Program-made: the position numbers and the translations under genes
Source: Oopsacas minuta
Taxonomy: Eukaryota; Animalia; Porifera
Direction: 5' to 3'
NCBI GenBank assembly: GCA_024704765.1
Contig: JAKMXF010000210.1
Location: forward strand, 496,001-560,000
DNA length: 64,000 nucleotides
Notes under the pieces: model-generated
Seen by the model: only the letters and a program-made list of their open reading frames with translations
Database searches by the model: none
What the model was told of the DNA's origin: nothing
Shown here: positions 5,606 to 27,938 of the stretch, one piece after another
How the letters are laid out: the number at the start of each line of letters is the position of its first letter
Position numbering within the stretch: the stretch's first letter is position 1

Positions 5606-8600
5606 TCATGAGTAGGTAAGCTCGATGGTACCCACAGCGTTGCAGATTTTATGTTCAAGATTATCGATGTAACGACATCTACAATAGTCAATAGTTTCCA
5701 CCTGACCAAGTATGCAGTCGCAATATTCGGTATTGTTTGGGAAATTCTTTTCACATTTACATCTTGCTTGTTGATCTACCGAGACAATTGTACACTCTCT
5801 CCCTCCAGGAAAGCATTCACAATTTCGGCACTGAGTTAATTCTTCTCTTGCCCGCACAAGAACCTCACTTGTGAGGGCATCAGTAATTGCGTCCCAGTTA
5901 CCGGTTTCATTTCTTCGAATAACCTTGAGATCCCAAACGTACCCTGTCGCATTTAGGGCGGTCTGTAGGTAGTCATTATGGATTTCCTCTCTTACTGAAT
6001 TATCTACAGTGTTTATAACCTCTGTATTTTCGAGTCTAAAAATCTCCTGAGAGCCTCCTACCCTATAGAAACATGTCTCAGCACTTGACACACCCAAACA
6101 ATCAATGGATGAGCCCCCATCATCTGTAGCTGTGAGAGTAACATCGATGATTTGAATAGGAATTATATTATTCTGTGTGAAAAGGTCCACGTAAAGTGAC
6201 CTACCAAAGTCAACGAAATTATTGAATAGAGAACTTGCAGCCTCAATCTCTTCGAAGCTGTCATAAAAGAAGTCTCTACGTTCATCTGTTACAAGGATGG
6301 CAAATCTTAAAGAATTTGGTCTTATTTGTGCGTATTTTTTCGCGAAATTCGTCGCTGCAAATCCATCTTCACGCTCCCCAATTTTAGGCAACCGCTTTAT
6401 TGTCTTTGTTACATTACTGTCATCGTTCATGTCGATTGTGAAATATACATTATCAGTAGGGCCACCTCTGTCAAGGTTTGGACCAACGAAATATGGGTTC
6501 TCTTTGTCACCTATACTGCCGAATGCGACAGCTGTGTATTGATTTTGATTGATTGTACTGTTTCCAACACAGCTTTCACGAAGTGAGCTCTCAAAACGTG
6601 GCAAGAAAGATCTCAAGAATTCATGTTCTGTATCCATAGATGCAGAAACGTCAATGATTAGTAAAATATCAGCGAAGAAATCTTCACCACAATCAGACTC
6701 GGTTAACAGGGTTTGACTCGCACCACAACATTCTACTGTAATTTCTACTGTACGAATATCTCCTGCACCATCTCTCTCAACACCTCTCTCAACACAGTCA
6801 TTACATGGACATTCAAATTCATATCTGTTTAGTCCAGTTACGACAGCCTGATATTTGTAGATGCAGAGATCTCTGATTGGTACCACGAGTTGATTTGGTC
6901 CACTGACGATTTGATCTGTGCGAATCAATTCAAGATTATTGTTTATTTCTCTGTGCCATTGAATTTCTTGGTCGAGAGAAAATGAATGAGCGAAGAGAGT
7001 GAGTGTTGCCTGTTTTGTTGCTATGTTAGAATCGCAGTTGGAGCATATTGTGCTGGTACTATCTGGATTGTTGTCACAAGAAACGACTGTCTGGACTATT
7101 AGATTGAAGGTATGTATGTCTTCTCCATACCGATTCCTAACAATAGAAGTATACTCTCCTGCACCATTAGATTGGAAGTTATGGATGATTATAGTCGCAG
7201 TATTACCTACATACTCAAAAGAGTAATCTACTCCTTGTATAAGTTCTACTCCTCCATAGAACCATTGGAAACTCCAAGGCCGTGTGCCCTCTCTGACAAT
7301 TCCTGTTATCCTCAGCTCTGAACCTGTCCTAGCAACAAGTGTTTGTCCGAATTGTGCCTGTGTCCCTGTGACTGTCCCTGAGATTGTCTTGTCCCATTTT
7401 GGTAAGATACCAATGGTAGTGAACTGTGTATCATTTCCGAATGCATTTTCTGCGATTAGAACATAGGAGCCCGCTATGTTGTCACCAACTTGTGAGAAAA
7501 CTAGATTATATGGATTTGTTTCAGAGACTGATGCATAGTTAGCTACTATGGATTGTTCAATAGGAATGAAATTCCCATTTACATCAACGTAGTACCAAGA
7601 TGTAGTGACAGGCTGTGTTCCCGCCCTGAGACGTGATCCAATTGTGAACATTGTCACTAGATCACCATCCAGTCCATAATACACTCTCTCTTCCATATTT
7701 CCAAATCCGCCTACATTGACTACCACATTGTCAGTTGTAATTGTGGTATTTCCTGAAGTCCATTCAAGGATTGGTGGTTCACCTCTAATACACGCTGAGC
7801 TTTCTTGACATGGCTGTAGGGTTCCTGACACACATCTGCACTCAACACATGCTTCCCTTTGTCCACATGCCAGACTGCTTCTTACGACAACATTGTTAAC
7901 AAATGCTTTGGTGAATGCATCTGTTTGGGAGCCCATCTTTTCGATGTCCCATGCGCTCCCTCCCCGACTCAAAGCTAACATAACATAGAAAATATCAATA
8001 GCTGACCCTGCTGAATTTTCTTTTACTTTACCTCCAGCTCTTTCTTCATAACCAGGCGGGTCTGATATGACTACTAATGCTTTTATACTACCATCAGTGT
8101 CTTTGTATATACCAAGTGCAGCATTTCCCTCACCATCTTCAAACTGAGCATCAACGATCACGTTTAGGATCACTTCTTCTCTGGCGAGTTCAGCTTCAAT
8201 AAAATCTCTGTCTAGTTCAGGAACAATAATATTACCATCCCGGAAACTCCCACAGTTAGCTCTTGGCCCATTTGTTATGAGTGTTATGTGTCGACACGAT
8301 TGATCTTGAAATTCTGCTGGGTATCTTCGCAGTGCTGAATAAATTGCGGCGTAACCGTCAGATGAAAATCCGGACGCTTCAAATTCGAACCCCACAATTA
8401 ATGGTGTAATTTCTACTGATGTACCACACAGGTCCTGAGGTGATATAGGGAATGATGTCCCATAACAACCCTCAGGTACACGATCATTATCTTGACCGAA
8501 TGTCATCAGACAGTACTGATTTAAACAAAGACTGTTCTCTTGCCCAAAGTTTATCTCAGCCAAGTTTCTTACCAGACGACCTGCAACATCTTTAACATTA

Positions 8601-10882
8601 TTATGGATATCTCCCATTGCACTTGTTTCAGCAACTGCGAATACCATATCTACGCACGAAGCCCGTCTGAAACCACTTATAATCTGTGTCATATTGCACT
8701 CAGTTGGACGACATTGATTTGTAGTATCAAAATCGAGTACTTCTATTTGATCACAGTTGTTAGTGCCATCAGTACATGAGCAGTTTTGACAGCCTACTAC
8801 CTCACAATTTTCGGGGGGAGGCTCATCCCTTATGGGCACATTAGGAATGATTTCATATATTAGGAAAGCTTTGGTGAAAGTTGTCCTGAAAGCTCTCGAT
8901 ACAGGCAGACTCCAAAGAATACCACCAGTAGCTCTGACCATCTCATAATAAGTATCTCTTGTGTTTTGTGTCTGATCACTAGCATCAGGAATTGTAAGTT
9001 GGATACCATCAGGGATGGACATCGTATCGAGAGTGTCATCATCTATCAAGTATAAAATTACATCATTTGGTAAGATGGCAAGAATCCGATCTTTGTCAAT
9101 ACCATAGGATGGATTAACCGTTATATTCAGATGCACAATAGCACTGAGGACGATACTAAATGTGTTCAGTGTTTGTGCCATATTTTGATTCAGTAGAGTT
9201 GGAATTCTAGTACTTGTTGGGTCAGGGGTGGGAGTTAAGTTATCGCGATCTTCGTCAGTTATGAGAACCACCTTACGACATGCAGGGTATATGTACTTAT
9301 ACTGTTGTAGTGCTCTGTAAATAGCTGCATATCCATCTTCCAATCTCCCTGCAGCCAAGAACTGAGATGCATTAACTAGATTTGTCAATTCTTCACTCGT
9401 CCCCCAGTAGTTTAAAAATTGTCCTTTATATGTTATTCCTCCTAAATCCAATATTCTACCAATATGATCTACACCTAGACTCCTATCAGCACCGAATCTG
9501 AGAACTCCATAATAATTGGTGCAAGTATCAGCAGAAACAAAACCGGATGCAGTTAATGCTATGTCGATTTCTTCAGATACCTGAGATAGCCAGATATGTT
9601 CAGGTCCCATTGATGCAGATTCATCGATGACATAGATTAAGTTGGTACACATTGCCGGCACGGCCTCTGTTTCTAGAAAAGTTGGTTCTTCGTTTGGATC
9701 GCACTCATCGAAACAAGGTCTATCGCGGATACATTGAAATGTGTTTCCATCACAGTAAACAAATCGGTCTATTGATGTATCATAGACGATTTGACCCAAT
9801 TCATAATCGCTGCAGTCAGAATTAAATGTAGAATTTAATTCTTTAATTATAATTCTCATCCCAACCGGTCCCTTGCTTCCAGTTTCCCCTTTAACTCCCT
9901 GATTTCCAACTGATCCTACATCCCCTTTATCTCCAGGCACACCCTTACTGCCTTTAGTACCCTTCCTCCCTTGATCCCCATTATCACCTCGACTTCCAAT
10001 TTCCCCATCATCACCTACTTCTCCAGGTGGTCCTGTCCCTGTTGGCCCTTGATCTCCTGGGTCTCCTTTCATTCCTATTGGTCCACCGTCACCTCTTTCG
10101 CCTTCTTCTCCAGGCTCTCCTTTGACGCCAGGTGACCCATCTGCTCCCGGGTCTCCAGCATCTCCCTGCCCACCTTGATCCCCTCGAGCTCCCATGTCTC
10201 CATCATTTCCCTTCTGTCCCCGAGGCCCATCATCTCCAGGAGCACCAACATCTCCATTCACTCCGGGCGGTCCTCGTTCACCATTGGGACCAGGTGCTCC
10301 TTTTTCCCCCTTTACCCCTGTCTCTGGTTTTGGGCATTCCTCAGGGTAACAAATACCAGGTAGTCCTGGCCTTCCCATGGCTCCTTCTTGACCTCTCGAT
10401 CCAGGATAGCCCTTCCCTCCCCTCACACCTCGGCAGCCATCAGGACAGTTTGGAGCTATTTGTAATTCAGTACATGCTGTTGTTTCAATTACTCCCTTGG
10501 TCTCGGCGACTGAGAAGGTGAGAATGCAACAATATTTGGCAGCTTCATTTTCTGTTACGTTGTAGATGCTTAGAGACATCTCAGTGTAACGACGAATGTT
10601 AGGGTATCCGACAACATTAAAACCATCATACTCGAGTCTATTATCGTTCAAATTCCAGTCTATAATAGGATTCTCATCTGGTACAGTACTGACTGGACAC
10701 CTGAGCTCAACTGAAGCTCCAGCACTTACTATAGCATTATCTCCTATGGTCACACGCGGAGTCGATATCCCGATGAGTTTGTATGTTTCTCCATTTCCAG
10801 CTAAGATTTCCCCTGTGTTTGCATTCTGTAGAAAAGCCACCAATACACATATCACCAGAATCCATGAAATTTTCGTTCCCAT
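5606..10882 (-). CDS. Secreted Ig - collagen - VWA - VWA - Ig - Ig - VWA protein, paralogue A (1758 aa, intronless)
   Basis: Signal peptide (ISWILVICVLVAFL), Ig domain (VELRC..W..AKYCC), Gly-X-Y region at 9854-10447, and three VWA-like domains (IYVIDESASM; VFAVAETSAM; LLIIDVSASM), each followed by a CxxCxCxxG-type motif. Two further Ig-like domains; no TM segment. Confidence 0.85.
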   Translation of the reverse strand: MGTKISWILVICVLVAFLQNANTGEILAGNGETYKLIGISTPRVTIGDNAIVSAGASVELRCPVSTVPDENPIIDWNLNDNRLEYDGFNVVGYPNIRRYTEMSLSIYNVTENEAAKYCCILTFSVAETKGVIETTACTELQIAPNCPDGCRGVRGGKGYPGSRGQEGAMGRPGLPGICYPEECPKPETGVKGEKGAPGPNGERGPPGVNGDVGAPGDDGPRGQKGNDGDMGARGDQGGQGDAGDPGADGSPGVKGEPGEEGERGDGGPIGMKGDPGDQGPTGTGPPGEVGDDGEIGSRGDNGDQGRKGTKGSKGVPGDKGDVGSVGNQGVKGETGSKGPVGMRIIIKELNSTFNSDCSDYELGQIVYDTSIDRFVYCDGNTFQCIRDRPCFDECDPNEEPTFLETEAVPAMCTNLIYVIDESASMGPEHIWLSQVSEEIDIALTASGFVSADTCTNYYGVLRFGADRSLGVDHIGRILDLGGITYKGQFLNYWGTSEELTNLVNASQFLAAGRLEDGYAAIYRALQQYKYIYPACRKVVLITDEDRDNLTPTPDPTSTRIPTLLNQNMAQTLNTFSIVLSAIVHLNITVNPSYGIDKDRILAILPNDVILYLIDDDTLDTMSIPDGIQLTIPDASDQTQNTRDTYYEMVRATGGILWSLPVSRAFRTTFTKAFLIYEIIPNVPIRDEPPPENCEVVGCQNCSCTDGTNNCDQIEVLDFDTTNQCRPTECNMTQIISGFRRASCVDMVFAVAETSAMGDIHNNVKDVAGRLVRNLAEINFGQENSLCLNQYCLMTFGQDNDRVPEGCYGTSFPISPQDLCGTSVEITPLIVGFEFEASGFSSDGYAAIYSALRRYPAEFQDQSCRHITLITNGPRANCGSFRDGNIIVPELDRDFIEAELAREEVILNVIVDAQFEDGEGNAALGIYKDTDGSIKALVVISDPPGYEERAGGKVKENSAGSAIDIFYVMLALSRGGSAWDIEKMGSQTDAFTKAFVNNVVVRSSLACGQREACVECRCVSGTLQPCQESSACIRGEPPILEWTSGNTTITTDNVVVNVGGFGNMEERVYYGLDGDLVTMFTIGSRLRAGTQPVTTSWYYVDVNGNFIPIEQSIVANYASVSETNPYNLVFSQVGDNIAGSYVLIAENAFGNDTQFTTIGILPKWDKTISGTVTGTQAQFGQTLVARTGSELRITGIVREGTRPWSFQWFYGGVELIQGVDYSFEYVGNTATIIIHNFQSNGAGEYTSIVRNRYGEDIHTFNLIVQTVVSCDNNPDSTSTICSNCDSNIATKQATLTLFAHSFSLDQEIQWHREINNNLELIRTDQIVSGPNQLVVPIRDLCIYKYQAVVTGLNRYEFECPCNDCVERGVERDGAGDIRTVEITVECCGASQTLLTESDCGEDFFADILLIIDVSASMDTEHEFLRSFLPRFESSLRESCVGNSTINQNQYTAVAFGSIGDKENPYFVGPNLDRGGPTDNVYFTIDMNDDSNVTKTIKRLPKIGEREDGFAATNFAKKYAQIRPNSLRFAILVTDERRDFFYDSFEEIEAASSLFNNFVDFGRSLYVDLFTQNNIIPIQIIDVTLTATDDGGSSIDCLGVSSAETCFYRVGGSQEIFRLENTEVINTVDNSVREEIHNDYLQTALNATGYVWDLKVIRRNETGNWDAITDALTSEVLVRAREELTQCRNCECFPGGRECTIVSVDQQARCKCEKNFPNNTEYCDCILGQVETIDYCRCRYIDNLEHKICNAVGTIELTYS
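7175..7622. repeat. 448-bp near-identical duplicate, copy in paralogue A (partner 24231-24678)
   Basis: Hand alignment at offset 17,056 shows 2 mismatches in 448 bp (7454 G/A; 7573 T/C). Confidence 0.95.
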
Positions 10883-10968: not shown

Positions 10969-11120
10969 CAGTGGAACCCCGGAAATACGGTCACCCTCGG
11001 GACCGAGAAAAATGGCCGTAATTGTGAAACTTTTTGAAAGAAACCATATTCTATAGTATATTAACCGGGACTTTAAAAGTGGCCGCTATTCTGGGGTGGC
11101 CGTTAAGCGGGGTTCCAATC
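10969..11120. mobile_element. Degenerate Tc1/mariner-superfamily (pogo/Tigger-like) MITE, 152 bp
   Basis: Left end TA|CAGTGGAACCCCGGAAATACGGTCACC. Right end reverse-complemented GATTGGAACCCCGCTTAACGGCCACC, followed by TA. These form imperfect ~26-bp TIRs with TA flanks. The element is a GC-rich island in AT-rich DNA and has no transposase ORF. Confidence 0.7.
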
Positions 11121-11186
11121 TATATAATTTATATGAATAATTTTTATCCATTTTTGTTACTTTATGTTATTCTTAGATCGATAATA

Positions 11187-11516
11187 ATGGCATACTTTTG
11201 CCCTTATTGTGGAAACTTGCTTAATGTTGAAGTACGAGGTACTGATTCAAATAGGTTGGCCTGTATGACGTGTCCACATGTTTATGAAATTTTTCAACAG
11301 ATCGTTATTAAGCGTTACCCGAGATTGAAAGAGGTAGACGACGTGCTCGGCGGTTCTTCAGCCTGGGAAAATGTCGATTCAACGGAAGAAACTTGTCCAA
11401 AATGCAAACACAAGCGAGCTTACTACCTGCAAATACAAACCAGGTCTGCTGATGAGCCTATGACTGTATTTTACAAATGTTGTAACGTTCCATGTGGCCA
11501 TAGATGGAAGGATTAA
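11187..11516 (+). CDS. POLR3K: RNA polymerase III subunit RPC10/C11 (109 aa)
   Basis: [13 protein letters not shown]-terminal zinc ribbon and TFIIS-like C-terminal ribbon ([24 protein letters not shown]). The true start is ATG 11187; the TTG start in the ORF track lies inside the MITE. Confidence 0.96.
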
Positions 11517-11878
11517 GGATAGCACATAGTTGTGCTGAAAAGGATTTTGTTTGCCGTTAGTTTGTAAACATTGATTAAACTATTTGACAATCTTGTTTCC
11601 AAATGTAAAATTACCCTTCCCATTCATTACCATAATTTAATTGGTATCAGGCTTTTGTTTCCACATTTTATGTGTACCAAATTATTTCGTTACTAAATAT
11701 CTCATTAGCGAAGGGTTATTTTCAGGGCTGAGAGTCTGTGTAATATTACTGTACATTCATGTACCAGATGCCCCATACCCTGCCCTGGGTATGTACTATG
11801 TATTTTCATTTCTAATATTTCTACAAACATTTAGATCTGCTCAGAACTTTCCTTAATAGATTATTTTTATATACAAAT

Positions 11879-14341
11879 ATGAATTGGAAGTTATCACATA
11901 CTAATGTGAAGATTGGATGCTTTATCATATCATGTCTCTGTTATATAAATTCTCTGTGGGGAGATTTTTGTTTTGATGATATTTCAGCCATTGTAGAAAA
12001 CAAAGATCTACGTCCAGGAACTCCCTTACTAAACCTATTGCAAAATGATTTCTGGGGTACACCCATGCATATAGAGGGCAGTCACAAGTCTTATAGGCCT
12101 TTAACTATATTTACGTTCAGAATTAATTACTATTTTGACGGGTTGCAACCCATAAGCTATCATATTGTTAATGTCCTATTGCATGGGATAGTGACTTATT
12201 TGTTCACTTCATTCGTTTCAGAAATTTCAGATAATTGTTGTATTGCTCTAATTTCAGGATTGCTTTTTGCAATTCATCCTATTCACACTGAAGCCATTGC
12301 TGGTCTAGTTGGAAGAGCTGAATCTCTCTCGGGAATATTCTTTCTATTAGTTTTATTTATTTACTCAAGAGCAAGTAATCACACTGGTTTGATTTATTGT
12401 ATAGAGATGGTATTATTGTATCTAGCTACGCTCTGTTCAATTTTAAGTAAAGAAGTAGGTATCACTGTGATTGCAATTTGCTGTGTCTACGATGCTCTAT
12501 ACACTGAAAAAATAGTCGTATTAAATTTCTTGTTGCCAACTTCTCCTATAGTCTGGTTTAAGAAATATAGTAGTATTTTGAAACGAATCACTCACCTACT
12601 CATTTTCACGCTTACTATATTATTCCTACGCATTAAGATAAACGGTCCAGGTCTACCGAGTTTTACACCATTAGATAATCCAGCTAATTATTCTCCATTT
12701 CCCACGCGTCAATTATCTTTTCTATATCTTTGTTTTATTAATACAGGGCTACTCTTCTGCCCTTCCTTTTTATGTGCGGACTGGACCATGCAAACAGTAC
12801 CTTTGATAGAATCCCCGTTAGATCCCAGAAATATCCTTACTTTACTCACATTTTCAGGTTACTTTATGCTTGGAATATGGGCCATTTCAGATAATACCTA
12901 CGACAAGAGGTTAGTATTAATGGCTCTGTCTATTATTATATTCCCTTATATACCGGCCTCAAATCTATTCTTCCCGGTAGGATTTGTAATAGCAGAAAGG
13001 ATACTATATCTACCCAGCATGGGGATGTGTTTATTGGTCGCATTGGGAGTAAATAAGTTAATGAAAATTAGAAAAGTTAAATATCTATGTTATCTATTCC
13101 TTTGTATAACCTGCTTATTCTACTGTACGAAAACAATGGTTAGAAACTTGGATTGGTCGAATGATTATTCACTTTTCAAATCGGGAATTAAAATAAATAA
13201 ACATAATGCTAAACTCTACAACAACTTAGGACATGTGTTTGAAAACCGTGAGCAATATCAAGAGGCAGAAGAGCTGTTCCTTAAAGCATCAGGTATCCAA
13301 CCGGACGATACTGGTTCTTGGATTAATCTAGGACGAGTTTTGAAAGCACAAAAACGTTATAACGAATCTGAGCTAGCATTAAAAACTGCCCTGCAGCAAA
13401 TGCCTAATATTACTGAGAAAGGTCAGTCGTTTAGAATTGCTCCTAATTTCTTGAATGTGTATTTTAACTACGCTAATCTGTTATCACAAAATCCTACACG
13501 TTATAAAGAGGCCGAGAATTATTATAAGACAACTCTACGAGTACGTCCTGATATGCCAGAAGCACACATGAACTATGGAAACTTGCTAATTAAAATTGGA
13601 GATTTTGATTCGGCATTGTCGCATTTTCAGATGGCTATTGACAAGAAACCAGATTACGCAGATGCCTATTATAACATGGCTACTACTTACCTTAAGAAGA
13701 AGGATAGTGCTACCGGCGAAAAGAATTTAAGGATAACATTATCTCTAGATCCTAACCACATACATGGGCTAGTTAATCTCGCCAACCTCTTACTCGAATA
13801 TGATACCTTAAAATCTCGTGATGAAGCAATGCTCTTATTCAAAAGAGTATTAGAGATTGATCCCAGCAATGAGCTAGCGTTGTTTAGCCTTGGTCTACTC
13901 TTCTCAGATGATGGCTTACACCAACAGGCAGAGGAAATGTTCTTACAGACAGTCAATGTAAATCCATTACATAAAAGCGCTCTATTCAACCTCGGATTTT
14001 ATGCTCTGACTTTCAAGAATTTTGTAAAGTGTATTGAGTACTTAGGTATACTTGTTGCAAACTATCCAGCCCATTTCCGTGGTATTTTCAATCTAGCGGA
14101 TTGTTATATGCATATTTCTGATAGAGAAAACGCGAAATTATACTATAAATTAACGCTTGAATTAGATCCCAACTTTACACCTGCTCTACACAATTTAGGT
14201 GTAGCATTGGCTCAAGAAAATGATTTTTTGGAAGCTATCGCTCTATTTGAACAAGTTTTGATACTTGAACCAAGTCACCAGAATGCTAAAATATATTTAG
14301 ACCTCTCGAAAAACGAGTTATATGGTAAATCTAAGCATTAG
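11879..14341 (+). CDS. TMTC3: Protein O-mannosyltransferase TMTC3-like (GT-C membrane domain + TPR repeats)
   Basis: FCFDDISAIVENKDL..NDFWGTPM..SHKSYRPL, CADWTMQTVPL and NAKLYNNLGH..QPDD..RIAPNFLNVY match the TMTC3 subfamily. Multiple TPRs; intronless. Confidence 0.9.
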   Translation: MNWKLSHTNVKIGCFIISCLCYINSLWGDFCFDDISAIVENKDLRPGTPLLNLLQNDFWGTPMHIEGSHKSYRPLTIFTFRINYYFDGLQPISYHIVNVLLHGIVTYLFTSFVSEISDNCCIALISGLLFAIHPIHTEAIAGLVGRAESLSGIFFLLVLFIYSRASNHTGLIYCIEMVLLYLATLCSILSKEVGITVIAICCVYDALYTEKIVVLNFLLPTSPIVWFKKYSSILKRITHLLIFTLTILFLRIKINGPGLPSFTPLDNPANYSPFPTRQLSFLYLCFINTGLLFCPSFLCADWTMQTVPLIESPLDPRNILTLLTFSGYFMLGIWAISDNTYDKRLVLMALSIIIFPYIPASNLFFPVGFVIAERILYLPSMGMCLLVALGVNKLMKIRKVKYLCYLFLCITCLFYCTKTMVRNLDWSNDYSLFKSGIKINKHNAKLYNNLGHVFENREQYQEAEELFLKASGIQPDDTGSWINLGRVLKAQKRYNESELALKTALQQMPNITEKGQSFRIAPNFLNVYFNYANLLSQNPTRYKEAENYYKTTLRVRPDMPEAHMNYGNLLIKIGDFDSALSHFQMAIDKKPDYADAYYNMATTYLKKKDSATGEKNLRITLSLDPNHIHGLVNLANLLLEYDTLKSRDEAMLLFKRVLEIDPSNELALFSLGLLFSDDGLHQQAEEMFLQTVNVNPLHKSALFNLGFYALTFKNFVKCIEYLGILVANYPAHFRGIFNLADCYMHISDRENAKLYYKLTLELDPNFTPALHNLGVALAQENDFLEAIALFEQVLILEPSHQNAKIYLDLSKNELYGKSKH

Positions 14342-14937
14342 TTTTTAAACTTTTAATATAATATTTTGATATTAAATCACTTATTTGTTGAATTTTAACA
14401 ATTTTATTCTTAAAATACATAAAATTGGTATAAATTAGATAATTATTGAGATTACTAACCTGATATGGATGCTCTGATGATAAAATATCCTTTCTTCAAT
14501 CAAATTCAGTGAAAATTGAACTGTAAAATAAGAATAAATTATGCAAACAGACAATTTATAACTAGGCCGATGCTCATATTACTTTGTTTGCAATTTAACT
14601 CCACTAACAATTCTATATTCACTGTTAAACTCCTACTCTACAATAGAGTTGATTTCTAATTAACTTTCATTATCTATTCAGGAATTATCCAGAGTAGGCT
14701 ATACATTGACTATTTTTAATAAATCAATCCATGTAAACATGGCCTTGTAGTGAATATTGTGAGAGATCTACTAATTTTACTCGAATAAAAATGTGTTTGA
14801 TCACTGTGTTTATGTGAGTGGTTTTCGAATGAATAATTAATTTGTGTATTGGCTATCTTCCAGCATATTTGTATTAAATTCATGAATTTCTTTGATAATT
14901 TACATTATTTCACTGAAGATCTGTTATCAACTCTAAA

Positions 14938-15726
14938 ATGAATTTGAGTTTATTTATCAAGAATGTTTGCAATAAAATCACACTATCATTGGTAACCCCT
15001 ACAGTAAAACTTCCCATTGGATATATGTGTTTATCCCATGATGATACCATAAGAGGGATGCAAGACAATCCTTTCTTTGAGAAATATAAAAAGCAACTTC
15101 ATAAAGTTAAAAACAATTCGAATAACCAAATTCCTCGAAAGATACCTAATCAGCCACGAATTAATCTGAATAAAAATGATACCAAATCTCAGTCGAAACA
15201 ACCTTTGGATTCTATACTAGATATTAGCAAACTCTTGGATAATACCAGTGAAGAGATAGCTGATATTTGGAATAGTTACCATTCAAATTTAGATTGTATA
15301 CATGGTACACTTCCAGCAGACAGTTACACCCTTACATCTACTCAAGGTACTCTTTGTCCTTACTTTATCTACCCCTTACCCTCTGATACAGGGTATAAGT
15401 TCATGTTCCAACAGTTTTCTAATAACCAATTTCATTTCACTGCCCTAGAAGATTACAATTCATTAAAAGAACATGCTCCTGTCTATCTAAGTATGTCCTA
15501 CTACTCAGAGCTTGCTAAGGAGAAAGATATTGTTCTTATGGCTGGAAAGTTTGACCTAGAGAAGATGAAAACGGAAGAAGCACAGTTATTAGCTCATTTT
15601 GTGCAGTTATACTATGGACAAAACAACAAAGAGAGAATTGAACTTATAAGGAGTTTCAATTTTACTCCTAACTTGTTTGATTATAAACAACTTATACAGC
15701 AATTCAAACAACTCACTTTTATGTAA
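14938..15726 (+). CDS. ATPAF1: ATP synthase mitochondrial F1 assembly factor 1 (ATP11 family)
   Basis: NPFFEKY, LDSILDI..IADIWNSYH, PYFIYPLP, FTALEDY, ELAKEKDIVLM and EAQLL..VQLYY motifs. Confidence 0.9.
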   Translation: MNLSLFIKNVCNKITLSLVTPTVKLPIGYMCLSHDDTIRGMQDNPFFEKYKKQLHKVKNNSNNQIPRKIPNQPRINLNKNDTKSQSKQPLDSILDISKLLDNTSEEIADIWNSYHSNLDCIHGTLPADSYTLTSTQGTLCPYFIYPLPSDTGYKFMFQQFSNNQFHFTALEDYNSLKEHAPVYLSMSYYSELAKEKDIVLMAGKFDLEKMKTEEAQLLAHFVQLYYGQNNKERIELIRSFNFTPNLFDYKQLIQQFKQLTFM

Positions 15727-15953
15727 ACAAATAAATTCTTGCAATCTTTAAGTTTAACTGGGGGGAGAGGGGGGGTAATTCCAGCATAGATCACTAATAA
15801 CACGTAATATTATTTTAGCATCCTCATCTCTTACTTATTCTACTCACTTTGCTTAAGTTTTATATATTTTTGTCAAAGGTGTAGTTTATATTTATACTTA
15901 TATTCACACAGAGTATTATTTTCGGACTACAAATTATAATAAGAAAGTTAGAA

Positions 15954-18314: not shown

Positions 18315-18536
18315 AATATGAATTATATATTTACATGTTCTATATAAATCTATATAGGCAGTGTATTTAGCTTGTCACAATAGACAAGAGTTCTCTACCT
18401 TGCTTGCGTATATATTGTTTGTGAACTCTTTAGAATTTATTAGATGAGACAAACTTTATTATGCATACGTAGTATAATGAAACCGGCTATAAACCGCACC
18501 TGTTTATATATAACTGATAACAGTTTCATAGCTAGA

Positions 18537-19680
18537 ATGAGTTTATGGGTAGATAAGTACAGACCTACTCAGCTGCATAAACTAGACTATCATCATGCGC
18601 TCTCCTCACAACTTAAGAGATTAGTGGACTCTGGAGATTTCCCTCATCTCTTGTTCTTTGGTCCCTCTGGCGCTGGTAAAAAGACTCGTATCATGTGTAC
18701 CTTAAGGGAAATGTATGGTGTAGGAGTAGAGAGATTAAGGATTGAAAATATAAACATTCAAACTCCCTCTAACAAGAAGATAGAATTAACAACGATAAAT
18801 AGCAATCATCATATAGAATTTAACCCGAGTGATGCGGGGATATATGACCGAGTAGTTGTGCAGGAAGTGCTAAAGAATATAGCTCAAATGCACACTTTAG
18901 ACACTGGATCACAGAGAGGATTTAAAGTTGTCGTATTGAACGAGGTGGATAAGTTGACTAGAGAGGCCCAACACTCACTTAGACGGACCATGGAGAAGTA
19001 TTCTAGCAACTGCAGACTTATCTTATGCTGCAATTCAACTGGTAGATATGATAACTATTTTACTTCTTATTATGCTAATTAAATATAATTATATTCTAGG
19101 TAAGGTAATAAGTCCTATTCGTAGCAGATGTCTAGGAATACGTGTACCAGCACCTTCTCACGAGGAGATATCACGTATATTGCATTATGTATGCAAGAAA
19201 GAAGGTGTGGTACTTCCTACCGAACTCTCTGGGAGGATCGCAGAAATGTCTAGAAGGAACCTCAGGCGTGCTCTTTTGATGGTAGAAGCTTGTCGGGTCC
19301 AGCAACACCCTATGTCCCCTGAACAATCCATCCCTCTTCCAGACTGGGAGCAATATATCAAGCAAACAGCTGATCTCATCCTGATGGAACAGAGCCCGAA
19401 ACAGTTGTTGGAAGTTAGAAGTCGGGTGTATGAACTGATGGCTCATGTCATTCCTGCTGACGTCATCATGAAGTATCTCTTGGAGGAACTGGTCAAGAGT
19501 TGTGACGGATCTATGAAGGCTGAGGTCATTACTGCTGCTGCAGAATTTGAACATAGAATTCATTTGGGTTCTAAACCAATATTCCATATCGAAGCCTTCG
19601 TTGCTAAATTCATGAGTATGTATAAGCGTTTCCTTGAAGAAGGTTTAGGAAACTTACAAGATATTGAAATGGATTTTTAG
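18537..19680 (+). CDS. RFC3: Replication factor C subunit 3 (2 exons)
   Basis: Starts MSLWVDKYRP; Walker A GPSGAGKKT; EVDKLTREAQHSLRRTMEKY. The 58-nt intron at 19042-19099 joins CNSTG/KVISPIRSRCL. Confidence 0.96.
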
Positions 19681-19803
19681 TTTTGCGATTGTACTCACTT
19701 CACACTTCTATCTAATGAAGAAATTCTCAAAAACGTAGGTTAGTATAATAGGTATTGCTTACTATTATTTGTTCTTATTTACAAAATATTAGATTTACAT
19801 GTA

Positions 19804-21360: not shown

Positions 21361-21506
21361 GCAGTTGTTTATACCATCTAGTTTTATGGAGATTTTACTT
21401 CCGAGATTAAAGTTATTTTCATCTAAATAATTGACAATAAATATGCGTGATTATTTGTGCGGGTTTTACACTTATTAAACACTTAGTTATACCTACTAAT
21501 TAAGAT

Positions 21507-22760: not shown

Positions 22761-25700
22761 TTAACTTGTAATTAATTGGCAAGGTTCTCCTGTATTTCTG
22801 GATAGATCTACGTTGAGACATTCACAATTTCCTGCTCCGTGTAACTGTTCACATTTACATAGTTCTTCTTCTGTAGAGGTAAGTTTCAAGGGTAAGCATT
22901 TAACATTACCTCCATAGAAACACCTACAGGTTTCACAGGTACCAGCTCTTATCCTTGTTACCACACTGCTGATAATGGTGTCACTAATTGCTTGCCTTTC
23001 CTCAGGGCCTCCGTTTATAATCGCATTTATATCCCATACGAATCCTCCAGCGTTTAACGAGGGTACAACAAAATCTTTGTGGATTTCCTCCATGTCTTCA
23101 TTACCTACCACGTTATTGACAATACTACCTCTTATCCTGTCTACACTAGTATCATTCCTTTGAGAATAGCACTGTAATAGATTAGAGGCTCCTATACAGT
23201 TATACGTGTCGTTCTGCTTTGTGTTTGCTGTGAGATTAGTGTTAACCAATAGAAGAGGGTGTAGTTCACGGATTGGATTATTATCTTTCAATGCCTCAGT
23301 GAACAAGGTTCTACCCTTATCTCCAAAGTTCTGAATTTGAAAATACGATTTCCCCGCCAAATCTACCTGAGAGTAGATACTCATGTCACTTTTCTTGTTT
23401 GTGCTCAAGATAAGAATTCGATTGTTTTTTGGCCTAACACGTTCGTTATTCAATGTCAATTTTACAGCTCCGTATGCTCCTCTACCCCCTATGTCTGTAG
23501 CTAAGCCAGTTACTTCTTCATGAAGTTTATCCAAGTTAGTGGTATTGTTTGGTGAAAATGTGAAATGATCTTCTCGAATAATTTCAGGTTCCATTTCGTT
23601 GATACTCATTCTTGTAGCTGTGTACTCGTTTCTCTCTTCTCCAATTCCAATACATACTTTGTTTAGTTGTTCTTCTAGATCCGGCAGGAGAATCTTAAAT
23701 ATGAAATCATTCACAGGTTTCATTTCAGTTGTTACATCTAGTACCAACATCACATTTACACCAGGTTCATTACCAGCGTTACAAGATTGGACCCAGACAT
23801 TTTCTTCTGTGCAACCAGCGATTTCTTTGCCATTCTTGAAACAGCTATTGACTGGACAATTGAACTTGATTGTATTATAGTAAGGTACGTCTACCTCGTA
23901 GTTATATTTACAAAATTCTGCGTAATTTAATGTTACATAGTTAGGTCCTAATTCGAGCGCTTTATTAGCGTATTCTTGTCTTGGTTCTGAATCATCTTGC
24001 TTGTACCAGGTCAGGTTCATGTCTGTCCTACCATTATGCATGTAAAATACTAATATTACTTCATCTGTAACGTTATTGTATGAACAAGAAGAACACATGG
24101 TTACGGTATCGGCAAGAATGTTGTCACATGAAATAGTTGTTTGGACTATCAGATTGAAAAAATGATTATCTTTCCTAAAACTATTGCCGCTACTTATAGT
24201 AACTGTGTATGATCCTGATAGCTGAGGGCCGAAGTTATGGATGATTATAGTCGCAGTATTACCTACATACTCAAAAGAGTAATCTACTCCTTGTATAAGT
24301 TCTACTCCTCCATAGAACCATTGGAAACTCCAAGGCCGTGTGCCCTCTCTGACAATTCCTGTTATCCTCAGCTCTGAACCTGTCCTAGCAACAAGTGTTT
24401 GTCCGAATTGTGCCTGTGTCCCTGTGACTGTCCCTGAGATTGTCTTGTCCCATTTTGGTAAGATACCAATGGTAGTGAACTGTGTATCATTTCCGAATGC
24501 ATTTTCTGCAATTAGAACATAGGAGCCCGCTATGTTGTCACCAACTTGTGAGAAAACTAGATTATATGGATTTGTTTCAGAGACTGATGCATAGTTAGCT
24601 ACTATGGATTGTTCAATAGGAATGAAATCCCCATTTACATCAACGTAGTACCAAGATGTAGTGACAGGCTGTGTTCCCTCTGTCAGGCGTGAACTTATAG
24701 TGAAAGTTGACACCAGATCACCATCCAGTCCATAATATACTGTTACTTCATTAGGGCCGTATCCCCCTACAAGCGCTAGTATATCGTCATCTGTAATTGT
24801 GATTATACCAGAGCTAGAGGTAAATGCTAGAGTTGGTGGCAAACCAGGAACAGCACAAACCTCACTCTCTTCACATCGCTGTAGTTCTCCTCCAATGCAC
24901 TTACACTCTACACAAGCTCTAGTTTGTCCACAAGACTCACTGCTCTTAATTACAACTGCCTTGACGAATGCTCGCGTGAAAAGATCTGTTTGTTCATCAC
25001 CCATAGCCCTTATGTTCCATGCACTTCCATTCAGCCCAATTGCTAGATTAATATAGTTCTGTTGGATATTCTCTCCAGCTTCCTTGACTTTACCTCCAGA
25101 CATGAGTTCGTACCCCAGGACTGCACTACTGTTGGGTACAACTGCTGTAATACTCCCGTCTATTTCTTGAAATATACCGATTGCTTCATTACCATTCTCA
25201 TCCTGAAATGTAGCATTGACGATAACATTGAGAACAATGTTAGCTCTTTGGAGGTCAGCCATGATTTCGTGTGTGTCTAGTTGTGGAATGATAGATTCTC
25301 CATCAGTGTGAGATCCACAATCGTATCTCTGTGTATCTGTGATGAGTGTTATGTGACGACAAGATTGTGATTGGAAATTGATGCTGTATGTCTGTAGTGC
25401 TGTGTGTATTGCTGCGTAACCATCAGCTTGTTGTCCTGTGGCTGTTAAGTTTAATCCAACAATAAGTGGAGCTAATTGAGATGAAGGTGCACATAACTTG
25501 TTCCCACGTGGGATAGGAAATGGATATGAGTAACAACGATCACTGATCCTATCATTATCCGCTCCGTATCCCATAATACAGTACTTGTTTGGACAGATAC
25601 TATTCTCCTGTCCAAAGTTGATCTTTGCTAGATTAGTAGGTAGTCTTATGGCTACATCTTTGATAGCAATATGTGCTGCTTGCATTGTATCCGTTTCTGC

Positions 25701-27938
25701 TACTGCGAATATCATATCTACACATGCAGGCTGTCTGAATCCAGAGATGACTTGTGTTGTATTACATTCCGTGGGTCTACATTGTGTGGTCGTGTTAAAA
25801 TCGATTGATCGGATTAGTTTGCAGTCATAATTTCCATCTTCACATATACATCTGTTACAGGAATCCAGTTTACAAGTATTATTTAATGTTACATGTGGAA
25901 TAACTTCATACTCTAGAAATGCATTAGTGAATGCTTCTCTGTATGTCCTAGAGGCGGGAAGACTCCATGCAATGCCACCAGTTTCTCTGACCATCTGGAA
26001 GTACGTTTGTTCCGTGTTACCTGCTGCCGAATCCTTCCTCACATACCCATCTGGGGCTGTATTGAATTGACCTGGCATATTCGCATCATAGTAGATAACA
26101 GAGTTATTTGGTAAGAGACCCATAATGGTGTTTGCATTGATGAGTGGCTGTCGGTTGTCCTGTGCTTGGAATTGAATGCTGATAACTGCACTGAGAGTAA
26201 TGCTGAATTGTGTGAGTATCTGCTGCATGTTTTGATTGAAGAGTGTAGGAACACGATCATAAGGAGGGTCTGGTGTAGGTGTTTCATTGTCTCTGTCCTC
26301 ATCTGTAATGAGTAGAATATTTCTACATGCTTGTCCTGTGAATGTGTATCTCTGTAATGCTCTGTAGATAGCTGCATAGCCGTCTTCTTTCCTTCCCTCA
26401 CCTTGGAAGGGATCTTCATTGATTACTCTTATCACAGCTTCATTATTTCCCCAGTAGGGTATAGTATTCCCTTCCTGGTCAATGATCCCTCCTAAATCTA
26501 TAGGTCTCCCTATCTGTTCAGCTCTTGACTTCTCTTCACCTGTACCGAATCCTAGAACAGCAAAATTGTTATTACACATTCCTGGGTCGTAGTTGCGTAC
26601 TGCTAGTACCTCCGGGATGGCATTAGAGACATTCTTCAACCAGATCTGTTCCTCCTTCATGGAAGCTGATTCATCAATAATGTAGATAAGGTTCATACAG
26701 TTTGTATTTACATCAGATGCAATGGTGTTGAATGGTAGTTCATCTTCTTGGCAGGTTGGATAACATGGTTTGTCCTGAATGCATTGGAAATGTGTGCCAT
26801 CACAGTAGACAAAACTTCCTATCACAGTGTCGTATATAATTTGTCCAGATTCATATTGTGTACAATCTGTATTATAGGTTGAGTTTATTGCACTGATGAT
26901 GATTCTCTGTCCAATTTTTCCTTTTTCCCCCCTTTCTCCTTTCCTACCTCTTTCTCCTTTTATTCCTGTGGGCCCCTCATCCCCAGGTAATCCTTTGTCA
27001 CTCTTTTGTCCTTTTGTTCCATTATTACCCATTTCTCCCATCTTTCCTATTTCTCCTTTTTCCCCTATATCTCCCTTTGGTCCTACTATCATCTCACCCT
27101 CTTCGCCCTTTTCTCCTTTCATTCCTCGTTCACCCTTTCCCCCGCTTACCCCTTCTTCCCCACGCTCTCCCTCAATACCCTGCTCTCCATTTTCACCATT
27201 TCTCCCATTTTCCCCCTTTTCCCCAATCTCTCCCTCTCTTCCTTTCTCTCCCTTATCCCCTACAGTTCCGTTTGTTCCATCTTTTCCACTTTCCCCTATA
27301 TTACCTTTTGCTCCATCTTCTCCTCTCGCCCCTTTTGCTCCATATATTCCCTTACTTCCATTAATGCCCTTCTTATAACAAACATTTGGATCACATAATC
27401 CTTGTACTCCCTGGATTCCCATCTCCCCTGTATCTCCTCTCTGTCCTTGCACCCCTTTCTTTCCCTTTCGTCCCATACAATTATCTGAACACTCTCCCAA
27501 CACTTCTAATTTAGTCATGCCTCTGTCCAATTCTTCACCTGTATTCACATCACGGAGAACACACTCATATGTGCCAGTATACAGAGTCGTTGTGTTAATT
27601 ATAATCATTTCGTTTCCTGAATATTGCCTTATATTAGGGAATATGATAGAGTTGAAGCTATCAAATATGACCTGTCTATCATTGAATACCCACTCTATTA
27701 TTACTTCATCTCCTAGGTCTGTTGTTGTCTCACAAATAATTGTAACTTCAGAATTAGAAGTAACAATCGCATTCTGTCCAATCAATACACGATAATCCCT
27801 ATACCCGAACAGATTCAGCATCTTGAATCTATGATTATTTTCAATATTGATCCCATTTACTTCTGACAGTATCGCTACTGTTAAGAACGTGAATAATAGT
27901 AACATTAATCTTTCCATTTTATTTCTTGCTACTTCCAT
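22761..27938 (-). CDS. Secreted Ig - collagen - VWA - VWA - Ig - Ig - VWA protein, paralogue B (1725 aa, intronless)
   Basis: Collinear with 5606-10882: signal peptide, Ig, Gly-X-Y region at 26904-27491, VWA1 (IYIIDESASM), VWA2 (IFAVAETDTM), two Ig-like domains, VWA3 (LVLDVTTEM) and a Cys-rich tail. Confidence 0.85.
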   Translation of the reverse strand: MEVARNKMERLMLLLFTFLTVAILSEVNGINIENNHRFKMLNLFGYRDYRVLIGQNAIVTSNSEVTIICETTTDLGDEVIIEWVFNDRQVIFDSFNSIIFPNIRQYSGNEMIIINTTTLYTGTYECVLRDVNTGEELDRGMTKLEVLGECSDNCMGRKGKKGVQGQRGDTGEMGIQGVQGLCDPNVCYKKGINGSKGIYGAKGARGEDGAKGNIGESGKDGTNGTVGDKGEKGREGEIGEKGENGRNGENGEQGIEGERGEEGVSGGKGERGMKGEKGEEGEMIVGPKGDIGEKGEIGKMGEMGNNGTKGQKSDKGLPGDEGPTGIKGERGRKGERGEKGKIGQRIIISAINSTYNTDCTQYESGQIIYDTVIGSFVYCDGTHFQCIQDKPCYPTCQEDELPFNTIASDVNTNCMNLIYIIDESASMKEEQIWLKNVSNAIPEVLAVRNYDPGMCNNNFAVLGFGTGEEKSRAEQIGRPIDLGGIIDQEGNTIPYWGNNEAVIRVINEDPFQGEGRKEDGYAAIYRALQRYTFTGQACRNILLITDEDRDNETPTPDPPYDRVPTLFNQNMQQILTQFSITLSAVISIQFQAQDNRQPLINANTIMGLLPNNSVIYYDANMPGQFNTAPDGYVRKDSAAGNTEQTYFQMVRETGGIAWSLPASRTYREAFTNAFLEYEVIPHVTLNNTCKLDSCNRCICEDGNYDCKLIRSIDFNTTTQCRPTECNTTQVISGFRQPACVDMIFAVAETDTMQAAHIAIKDVAIRLPTNLAKINFGQENSICPNKYCIMGYGADNDRISDRCYSYPFPIPRGNKLCAPSSQLAPLIVGLNLTATGQQADGYAAIHTALQTYSINFQSQSCRHITLITDTQRYDCGSHTDGESIIPQLDTHEIMADLQRANIVLNVIVNATFQDENGNEAIGIFQEIDGSITAVVPNSSAVLGYELMSGGKVKEAGENIQQNYINLAIGLNGSAWNIRAMGDEQTDLFTRAFVKAVVIKSSESCGQTRACVECKCIGGELQRCEESEVCAVPGLPPTLAFTSSSGIITITDDDILALVGGYGPNEVTVYYGLDGDLVSTFTISSRLTEGTQPVTTSWYYVDVNGDFIPIEQSIVANYASVSETNPYNLVFSQVGDNIAGSYVLIAENAFGNDTQFTTIGILPKWDKTISGTVTGTQAQFGQTLVARTGSELRITGIVREGTRPWSFQWFYGGVELIQGVDYSFEYVGNTATIIIHNFGPQLSGSYTVTISSGNSFRKDNHFFNLIVQTTISCDNILADTVTMCSSCSYNNVTDEVILVFYMHNGRTDMNLTWYKQDDSEPRQEYANKALELGPNYVTLNYAEFCKYNYEVDVPYYNTIKFNCPVNSCFKNGKEIAGCTEENVWVQSCNAGNEPGVNVMLVLDVTTEMKPVNDFIFKILLPDLEEQLNKVCIGIGEERNEYTATRMSINEMEPEIIREDHFTFSPNNTTNLDKLHEEVTGLATDIGGRGAYGAVKLTLNNERVRPKNNRILILSTNKKSDMSIYSQVDLAGKSYFQIQNFGDKGRTLFTEALKDNNPIRELHPLLLVNTNLTANTKQNDTYNCIGASNLLQCYSQRNDTSVDRIRGSIVNNVVGNEDMEEIHKDFVVPSLNAGGFVWDINAIINGGPEERQAISDTIISSVVTRIRAGTCETCRCFYGGNVKCLPLKLTSTEEELCKCEQLHGAGNCECLNVDLSRNTGEPCQLITS
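24231..24678. repeat. 448-bp near-identical duplicate, copy in paralogue B (partner 7175-7622)
   Basis: Same alignment. The ORF track also gives identical antisense peptides at 7284-7466 and 24340-24522. Confidence 0.95.

Follow-up and report, generated by a model that had tools for sequence, protein, structure and literature searches.

The window analysed here, a stretch of 64,000 nucleotides (64 kb) of Oopsacas minuta DNA, contains two paralogous genes, A and B, whose collagen rods have equal length and are interrupted at the same place, and the question raised by this locus is whether such chains are partners in one mixed triple helix, as was proposed in a preliminary description of the sequence. 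Coordinates of both genes are positions within the window, and all features listed for them lie on the minus strand.

Architecture of the two genes

Gene A (5606..10882) is a single intronless open reading frame of 1758 aa in the ORF list, with a product composed, in order, of a signal peptide, Ig, a collagen region, a Cys-rich junction, three VWA-like domains separated by Cys-rich spacers, and Ig domains. Gene B (22761..27938), likewise a single intronless open reading frame (1725 aa), has the same architecture, and the two proteins are 46% identical. Pfam finds Collagen, I-set and Ig_3 in A, VWA being only weak. The Collagen profile (PF01391) scores 86.5 bits in A and 86.7 bits in B against a gathering cut-off of 27.2, and the repeats of the collagen superfamily are present as 10 + 31 + 20 triplets in A and as 9 + 31 + 20 triplets, with one Gly-to-Ser replacement, in B.

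The collagen region of A opens with a C-x3-C pair (C146, C150) and a mini-helix of 10 triplets running from GCR to GIC (aa 149-178; together 10349..10447), followed by a C-x4-C knot motif (C178 to C183) and the 5-residue linker PKPET (10319..10351). The main rod, delimited by regex and composition counts, covers 155 residues (aa 189-343; 9854..10318) and consists of 31 triplets, a Gly-Thr break (10034-10039) and 20 triplets ending in GMR, after which III follows. Behind it stands a junction module (9698..9853) comprising a hydrophobic stretch, an NST sequon that is conserved in the alignments and a Cys-rich three-strand beta unit, for which AF2 places strands at model residues 30-50 with a pLDDT of about 67-77. 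The first VWA-like domain, with a D-x-S-x-S motif, lies at 8813..9655 and scores below the cut-off of Pfam VWA_2.

The same parts are found in B, namely a C-x3-C pair (C150, C154) with a mini-helix made of NCM plus 9 triplets (aa 153-182; 27393..27491), a C-x4-C knot motif (C182 to C187) with the 3-residue linker YKK (27369..27395), and a main rod of 155 residues (aa 191-345; 26904..27368), delimited by the same counts, in which 31 triplets, an Ile-Val break (27084-27089) and 20 triplets are followed, after the final GQR, by III. The Gly-to-Ser replacement is located within the 20 triplets, at SDK (26994-27002), and the junction module (26748..26903) shares about 70% of its residues with its counterpart in A. 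Mini-helix length and its Cys pair are kept in every A- or B-type gene read over that stretch, and wherever a family member was read over the respective positions, it has the conserved Cys pairs and junction module.

In the C-terminal body, PF00092 and PF13519 reach 17-19 bits in A and B against cut-offs of 23.8 and 27, and D-x-S-x-S motifs occur in the first and third VWA-like domains. For the first VWA-like domain of A, the best Foldseek matches of the AF2 model (pLDDT 70.6) were integrin beta I-like and VWA chains, with E only about 2e-3 and TM about 0.2-0.3; VWA also led in the Atlas feature search, with scores below 0.8, and nothing past such weak VWA leads came from Pfam applied to separate pieces of the body, from a PDB profile search or from the Atlas. 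A profile search with the post-rod module and the first VWA-like domain recovered VWA proteins in other sponges, which do exceed the Pfam VWA cut-off, and the same post-rod module follows collagen in the relatives from Oscarella and Corticium.

Agreement between the two rods

Regex counts reproduced the hand-counted layout of 31 triplets, a 2-residue break and 20 triplets in both chains, together with the composition reported for A (16 Pro; +18/-27, that is K11+R7 and D18+E9) and for B (3 Pro, 20 Lys, 60 charged residues and the single Gly-to-Ser). The statement that the register is exact had to be narrowed, since it applies inside the helices but not between the runs, where A has 10 residues (YPEECPKPET) and B has 8 (DPNVCYKK), the linker after the second Cys being 2 residues longer in A (5 aa) than in B (3 aa). 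Similarly, the N-terminal runs described as equal do align over 30 residues in both chains, but with NCM plus 9 triplets in B against 10 triplets in A, and the 2-residue breaks, though present in both, are of unlike kinds: that of A is Gly-X-Gly, with one residue missing, and that of B consists of four non-Gly residues flanked by Gly.

The alignment of A and B contains 39 gap events in 1775 columns, so that about 4.1 would be expected per 185 collagen residues; none is present within the Gly-X-Y runs (Poisson P about 0.02), and the length match therefore exceeds chance. Third-codon-position identity in the rod is 0.30-0.34, which means that recent gene conversion did not produce the match.

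Conservation of the rod in glass sponges

Rods were compared in a set of 10 A-type and 10 B-type sequences, drawn from seven or more glass-sponge assemblies. Two-exon paralogues in the C slot of other sponges were read one exon at a time, and the protein searches returned incomplete sets of matches, in which a missing gene is no evidence of absence. The tree contains two deep clades, A-type and B-type, with 100/100 support each, and the split is older than all glass sponges sampled. Genomes carry 2 to 4 copies of the family, including A duplicates and B/A chimeras, and each assembly whose contigs were of sufficient length yielded one or more rods of both the A-type and the B-type. Rod-less members are present in ERZ25071281. 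This assembly had been considered as a species with a B rod but solely a rod-less A-type gene (P0007), a reading that was dropped because the A slot near TMTC3 holds an A gene with a 155-residue rod (L012 3971-9187).

Whether orthologues keep the 31 + 2 + 20 layout had been named as a check, and the answer differs between the subfamilies: the 155-residue rod of this layout is found in all 10 A-type chains and in 7 of the 10 B-type chains (17/20 in total), three B-type rods departing from it. In ERZ25766962 the B rod has 154 aa and the C rod 153 aa, and in ERZ20067936 the B rod has 153 aa and three Gly-to-Glu replacements; these shorter rods also carry additional breaks, and the A rod of each genome is 155 residues long. 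Orthologue rods varying independently in length had been put forward as evidence against co-assembly, and in these two assemblies such variation does occur.

Length and sequence behave differently. The X and Y positions diverge fast: A orthologues agree at 16-50% of them (58-65% over the entire protein) and A and B at about 20%, and few of these positions conserve their charge class in either the A-type or the B-type subfamily. In the seven full-length B-type rods Gly is nevertheless retained at 49-51 of the 51 triplet positions. Gly replacements (by Ser, Ala, Arg or Glu) or one-residue deletions are seen in 9 of the 10 B-type rods and in none of the A-type rods, so that within this set replacements are confined to the B-type. 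The break is Gly-X-Gly in A and a four-residue one in most B-type rods, while the knot-to-rod linker has 5 aa in all 10 A-type chains and 3-11 aa in the B-type. The contrast between a Pro-rich A and an almost Pro-free B, which had been presented as a trait of the pair, was observed only in O. minuta, the A orthologues having 1-9 Pro; B-type rods contain 3-5 Pro per about 155 residues.

Charge pairing between chains

Charge pairing was scored in a home-made integer axial/lateral scheme in which Lys of the leading chain pairs with an acidic residue of the lagging chain (PMC7824840); the reverse contact direction is contradicted by the same source and was set aside. This scheme is crude and is no calibrated stability predictor, and on it BBB scored 86, BBA 80, BAA 64.5 and AAA 45.5, the best mixed registers having Lys in the leading chain. 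The two mixed compositions together exceed AAA + BBB by 13 units, against 11 +/- 17 for shuffled triplets (p = 0.44), and A/B pairs from the same species scored no higher than cross-species pairs. A stability calculation over AAA, BBB, AAB and ABB had been suggested as a way to detect co-assembly; the crude charge score showed no preference for heterotrimers beyond what composition gives, and BBB ranked first.

B contains 8 KGE, 1 KGD and 3 RGE motifs, and the net charge is -9 in A and -2 in B. Like-charged peptides cannot, as a rule, self-associate (PMC7824840), and neither A nor B is of that kind.

Proposed assembly of the chains

A and B appear to be anciently separated chains of a sponge-specific, secreted Ig-collagen-VWA-like family. 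The reading we prefer, and hold with middling confidence, is that each forms its own homotrimer, A3 or B3, the register being inherited and the rod length selected, with the rod serving as a fixed-length spacer or ruler that has a hinge and no sequence-specific pairing code. In each chain an N-terminal Ig domain is followed by a mini-helix of 30 residues, which the C-x3-C and C-x4-C pairs clamp. Next come the 155-residue rod, about 44 nm long if the helix is complete, whose single conserved break follows triplet 31, the hinge being predicted after roughly 27 nm; an N-glycosylation sequon with the Cys-rich junction module; and, C-terminally, VWA-like and Ig domains that add up to about 1400 residues. 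The identical register would have come from the common ancestor, with selection preserving the length of the rod and the place of its break and leaving the X and Y residues free to drift. The trimers would most likely be disulfide-locked and would begin to fold at the junction module, proceeding toward the N terminus, and A3 and B3 may act side by side in a matrix-linking role within one matrix assembly, A being presumably maintained as a perfect helix and local defects being permitted in B-type rods.

With a copy number of 2 to 4, duplicates and chimeras, interchangeable homotrimers fit more easily than a fixed stoichiometry. In known heterotrimeric collagens, non-collagenous domains are considered crucial when chains recognise and select one another (PMC12562938). 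Some observations sit less well with separate A3 and B3 trimers. Both rod types are kept in each long-contig assembly, as obligate partners would be, bulky residues in all three chains at the same level of a homotrimer would be expected to be poorly tolerated whereas a single one in a mixed helix would be accommodated more easily, and the junction modules and Cys knots of A and B are so similar that they present no obvious bar to mixing.

These same observations lead to the alternative of A2B or AB2 molecules, which we consider possible but rather doubtful, in which perfect A chains would carry the helix and a minority B chain would tolerate Gly replacements. Chains in such a helix need register and would for this reason retain equal rod length and break position, as is the case in O. 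minuta and in 7 of the 10 B-type rods. The confinement of Gly replacements to the B-type is what a minority chain of a mixed helix might show, the nearly identical Cys knots and similar junction modules suggest that A and B are compatible, the summed scores of BBA and BAA do exceed those of AAA and BBB, and C1q provides a precedent of a heterotrimer with three chains that have unlike interruptions at one level. Against this, the 13-unit excess is what shuffled triplets yield and no single composition scores better than BBB; in ERZ25766962 and ERZ20067936 the B-type rods are short by 1-2 residues and have extra breaks, beside an unchanged A rod; linker length and the kind of break differ between the two types; the charge class of X and Y positions is rarely kept in either subfamily; and copy number and chimeras vary between species. 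The premise that matching length and break position mark A and B as partners did not survive the wider comparison, in which they are an ancestral family trait shared by 17 of 20 rods, and because the trait holds family-wide, equal rod length alone does not prove a mixed A/B molecule. In its specific form, this alternative would be one mixed, disulfide-knotted A/B trimer in which A templates the defect-tolerant B and the junction module or Cys knots choose the chains, and we regard it as tentative at best.

An improbable third reading, in which B-type rods have lost the stable triple helix and become flexible, partly unfolded tethers of conserved length, the chains being held together by the Cys knots and junction module alone, could draw on their low imino acid content (about 2%), on the loss of single residues and the replacement of Gly by Arg or Glu at sites differing between lineages and on the rod-less members in ERZ25071281, which imply that the rod is dispensable, yet it is opposed by the near-complete retention of Gly in the seven full-length B-type rods despite X/Y divergence, which indicates selection for a helix, by the many KGE-type stabilising pairs in O. 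minuta B, and by the equally Pro-poor, yet perfect, rods of most A orthologues.

Novelty and significance

To our knowledge, glass-sponge matrix proteins are almost unstudied. Glass sponges have neither a basement membrane nor type IV collagen (PMC10280926), and no description of an Ig-collagen-VWA-like family was found in the literature searched. This is a large collagen type that the sources leave unnamed, the relatives from Oscarella and Corticium being entered only as uncharacterised. Tandem pairs called merely collagens in a paper on Aphrocallistes are candidates for the same family.

A 155-residue rod frozen across an old duplication and many species, while its sequence drifts, offers a clean natural case in which selection would act on the length of a triple helix and the position of its hinge, not on its sequence. 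If A and B do not mix, equal helix length in paralogues is a poor predictor of heterotrimers; if they do, they provide a simple system of partner choice, their rods being short, their genes intronless and their flanking modules small. A mixed trimer, if true, would mean that glass sponges invented the assembly of heterotrimeric collagen independently, and the invariant-length rod would be a molecular ruler in their matrix.

Comparison with known collagens

Vertebrate collagens of types VI, VII, XII, XIV and XXVIII are, like A and B, secreted multidomain proteins that combine an imperfect triple helix with several VWA-fold domains. Among named matches type VII ranked first, by the Gly-X-Y repeat only and over 9-14% of the query, and no sequence relationship to the vertebrate VWA collagens beyond this repeat was detected. 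A and B differ from them in their short helix (185 residues in total), which follows an Ig domain close to the N terminus, and in VWA-like domains that are below Pfam cut-offs and have at best an integrin-beta-I-like fold; FN3, Kunitz and TSPN domains were not found in either protein.

FACIT collagens (IX, XII, XIV and others) have as their COL1/NC1 hallmark two Cys four residues apart right after the last triplet, which form an interchain disulfide knot. The sequences GIC-YPEE-C in A and GLC-DPNV-C in B resemble this hallmark as generally described, and the division of the helix into several collagenous segments by short non-collagenous stretches is a further likeness. Unlike in FACIT collagens, the C-x4-C of A and B is situated between two helices and not C-terminally, and their Pfam domains are limited to Ig, Collagen and VWA below threshold, with neither an N-terminal domain of the TSPN/LamG type nor the FACIT domain set.

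The defence collagens (C1q, mannose-binding lectin, surfactant protein A and the ficolins) are similar in having an N-terminal Cys-linked region, a short stalk with a single kink-type break and large C-terminal globular parts. The break in the stalk of mannose-binding lectin is Gly-X-Gly, as in A-type chains, and in C1q the products of neighbouring paralogous genes, with unlike interruptions at one level, form one heterotrimer. In place of their heads (no C-type lectin, gC1q or fibrinogen-like domain was found by Pfam in A or B), the two chains carry VWA-like and Ig domains that together make up about 1400 residues.

True relatives are found in Oscarella pearsei (EP00118_P016170) and Corticium candelabrum (XP_062521220.1), which the profile of the post-rod module and first VWA-like domain matches with E about 1e-14 and 1e-10, respectively, from the junction onward. 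Both lack Ig domains and have a single module within about 670 aa; in them an aromatic-rich break takes the place of the glass-sponge C-x4-C knot and the rods have other lengths and several imperfections, but the two proteins share with A and B the whole succession of a C-x3-C pair, a short Gly-X-Y run, a break, a long rod, the junction module, a VWA-like domain and a Cys-rich tail.

Gene and helix architecture

Genes A (5606-10882, 1758 aa) and B (22761-27938, 1725 aa), both on the minus strand, each consist of one uninterrupted ORF; their products begin with a hydrophobic, signal-peptide-like stretch and share 46% identity from end to end. Pfam recognises in both an N-terminal Ig domain, then a collagen region scoring 86.5 bits in A and 86.7 in B (cut-off 27.2), and an I-set Ig domain near residue 1200; VWA matches, below the Pfam threshold, are found in A only, and residues 336-1060 contain no domain recognised by Pfam. 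In AF2 (pLDDT 70.6), residues 336-720 are modelled as a small Cys-rich unit of three strands and, after it, an alpha/beta domain that among solved structures comes closest, though only weakly (E ~2e-3), to integrin beta I-like and VWA folds; a D-x-S-x-S metal-site motif is kept in two of the three VWA-like domains of each body.

The helices were counted by script and compared with the hand counts of the preliminary description, which for both rods, Pro and charges were all reproduced exactly. A C-x3-C pair in each protein precedes a mini-helix of 30 aligned residues (10 triplets in A, the last being GIC; NCM and 9 triplets in B), after which come a C-x4-C knot, a linker of 5 aa in A and 3 aa in B, and the main rod. 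This rod consists of 31 triplets, GT and 20 triplets in A (9854-10318) and of 31 triplets, IV and 20 triplets in B (26904-27368), where one SDK occupies a Gly position, and is followed in both by III. The A rod has 16 Pro and a charge content of K11 R7 D18 E9, and the B rod 3 Pro and 60 charged residues, including 20 Lys. The proposal that the register is exactly shared is therefore correct within the helices (31 + 2 + 20 in both) but does not extend to the inter-helix stretch, which differs in length by two residues, or to the kind of break, which is Gly-X-Gly in A and four non-Gly residues between two Gly in B, at equal length.

The A/B alignment contains 39 gap events in 1775 columns, a rate at which the 185 collagen residues should have about 4; the helices have none, an absence that goes beyond chance. 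Recent gene conversion does not explain the match of the rods, since their third-codon identity is 0.30-0.34. A conversion tract between the two genes was found in the Ig region (7175-7622 and 24231-24678, aa ~1085-1235); 300 nt of it are exactly identical (7175-7474 and 24231-24530), nucleotide identity in its core is 99-100% and tapers toward both ends, and outside it third codon positions are saturated.

A two-clade family in glass sponges

The family also occurs in other assemblies, at least seven by word-based searches and contig look-ups, with a conserved gene order: ANK-MYND, B, aldo-keto reductase, carboxyltransferase, RFC/Rad17, VIT-VWA, ATP11, an optional third gene position (the C slot), TMTC3-like, RPB9-like, A and transglutaminase. 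The block in and around the A-B interval (11034-22355 in the window) is syntenic in all assemblies; its VIT-VWA gene is inter-alpha-trypsin-inhibitor-like, the TMTC3-like O-mannosyltransferase adjoins A, and the transglutaminase lies just past A in other assemblies (contigs L002, L007, L009 and L012). The proximity of matrix-modifying enzyme genes to matrix genes may be a coincidence.

In a maximum-likelihood tree of residues 350-1000, A-type and B-type members form separate clades, each with a support of 100/100, and the A/B duplication is therefore older than all of the species sampled. Genes occupying the C slot between ATP11 and TMTC3 in other glass sponges (L001 3840-8594; L005 10001-14842; P0122) have an intron that splits off the Ig exon, and such two-exon genes were read exon by exon, as separate pieces. 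Since they are B-type in the N-terminal half, rod included, and cluster over the last third with the A gene of their own species, they are, judging by their sequences, recombinant or converted chimeras. Gene number per genome ranges from two in the window to four in ERZ25766962 (B, C, A1 and A2). ERZ25071281 has, besides a normal A and B, two rod-less members: a non-syntenic A-like gene (P0007, L008 10001-14470) from which the mini-helix, the rod and the junction module (the Cys-rich unit directly after the rod) have been lost cleanly and in frame, and a C-slot gene of 823 aa (L012 13342-15813) in which the first two VWA-like domains are also absent. The full-length A-type gene of this genome (L012 3971-9187), reached by contig walking, appears in neither word-search match list, so absence from these lists does not equal absence from a genome.

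Rod layout is conserved and rod sequence is not

The 31 + 2 + 20 layout is retained in all ten A-type rods (31 triplets, Gly-X, 20 triplets; 155 residues, without defect) and in seven of the ten B-type rods, which measure exactly 155 residues, but three B-type rods deviate. In ERZ25766962 the rod of B (P0010) is 154 residues long and has an additional Gly-X-Gly, and the rod of the C gene is 153 residues long; that of ERZ20067936 (P0011) has 153 residues and three Gly-to-Glu replacements. A single Gly replacement specific to its lineage is present in six of the seven full-length B-type rods (to Ser in two, to Arg in two, and to Ala and Glu in one each). The post-knot linker is 5 residues long in 10/10 A-type chains and 3-11 in B-type chains.

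Whole-protein identity is 58-65% among A orthologues and 46% between A and B, but at the 102 X/Y positions the figures fall to 16-50% and ~20%, respectively. The two subfamilies share few conserved positions, among them an acidic pair near triplet 24; Lys-Gly-X-Pro-Gly early in the 20-triplet segment, common to both subfamilies in all compared rods but one, holds their sole widely kept Pro, and an Asn-Ser-Thr sequon lies six residues past the last triplet in every rod-bearing member (9820-9828 in A; 26870-26878 in B). From this shared layout and the low X/Y identity it follows that rod length and break position, and not rod sequence, are an ancestral and strongly selected trait of the family.

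The Pro-rich character attributed to A is particular to the genome of the window (16 Pro) and, in weaker form, its nearest relatives (9); the other A rods have 1-5 Pro. Both window rods seem more stabilised than their orthologues, B having a KGE-type pair score of 86 vs 36-60. Speculatively, a Pro-rich A and a KGE-rich B are perhaps two routes to a stabler helix, linked to a warmer habitat.

Chain composition and proposed assembly

The matching registers had been taken to mean that A and B co-assemble as A2B or AB2 heterotrimers. For known heterotrimeric collagens, a statement in PMC12562938 holds non-collagenous domains to be crucial for chain recognition and selection; the candidates for this role here are the two Cys pairs and the junction module, which differ little between A and B and neither enforce mixing nor forbid it. 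We scored charge contacts between Lys/Arg at Y and Asp/Glu at X of the next chain, axial and lateral, in every composition and register, with a direction rule that agrees with the review PMC7824840. This uncalibrated score (chains named leading, middle, trailing) was 86 for BBB, 80 for BBA, 64.5 for BAA and 45.5 for AAA; the best mixed pair exceeded two homotrimers by 13 uncalibrated units, shuffled triplet orders giving 11 +/- 17 (p = 0.44), and same-species A/B pairs scored no better than cross-species pairs. Both chains are zwitterionic (net charge -9 in A, -2 in B), and neither is of the like-charged kind incapable of self-association.

We give separate A and B homotrimers about an even chance. 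A mixed heterotrimer is a less probable arrangement: both rod types are present in every assembly with long enough contigs, and Gly replacements, some of them bulky, are confined to B-type rods, as expected of a minority chain, but obligate pairing is at odds with the variable linker of B-type chains, with variable copy number and the existence of chimeras, and with rods that vary independently: in two genomes B-type rods have become shorter while the A rod has kept its length, the outcome that the preliminary description had named as refuting co-assembly. That the B rod is largely unfolded we regard as improbable.

The proposed trimer would start at the junction module, where three chains come together; from there the helix would zip up toward the N-terminal end, past the conserved hinge, and would be locked by the two Cys knots that flank the mini-helix. 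With a triple-helix rise of 0.286 nm per residue, the product would have three Ig heads, three large bodies and a rod of ~44 nm with a hinge after ~27 nm. A molecule of this form would be well suited to serve as a linker of fixed span in the matrix of glass sponges.

Relatives in other sponges

Full-length relatives are found in ENA assemblies and more distant ones in sponges of other classes, a distribution that agrees with a glass-sponge origin for the window; our literature searches for the family found no paper describing such a collagen. A wide search with a profile of the junction module and first VWA-like domain returned 111 proteins at E <= 1e-10 among 1.84 billion representatives. The best of these were looked up by name and domain, and the named relatives among them are all from sponges, without a functional name in their sources. 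They include VWA proteins that lack collagen, which carry a laminin-G domain in Oscarella pearsei and EGF repeats in Sycon ciliatum, and single-module homoscleromorph proteins of ~670 aa from O. pearsei (P0302) and Corticium candelabrum (P0373). The latter two share the order of parts seen in glass sponges, namely short helix, break, long rod, junction module, VWA-like domain and Cys-rich tail, but have an aromatic-rich, PPYFHWH-like break in place of the C-x4-C knot.
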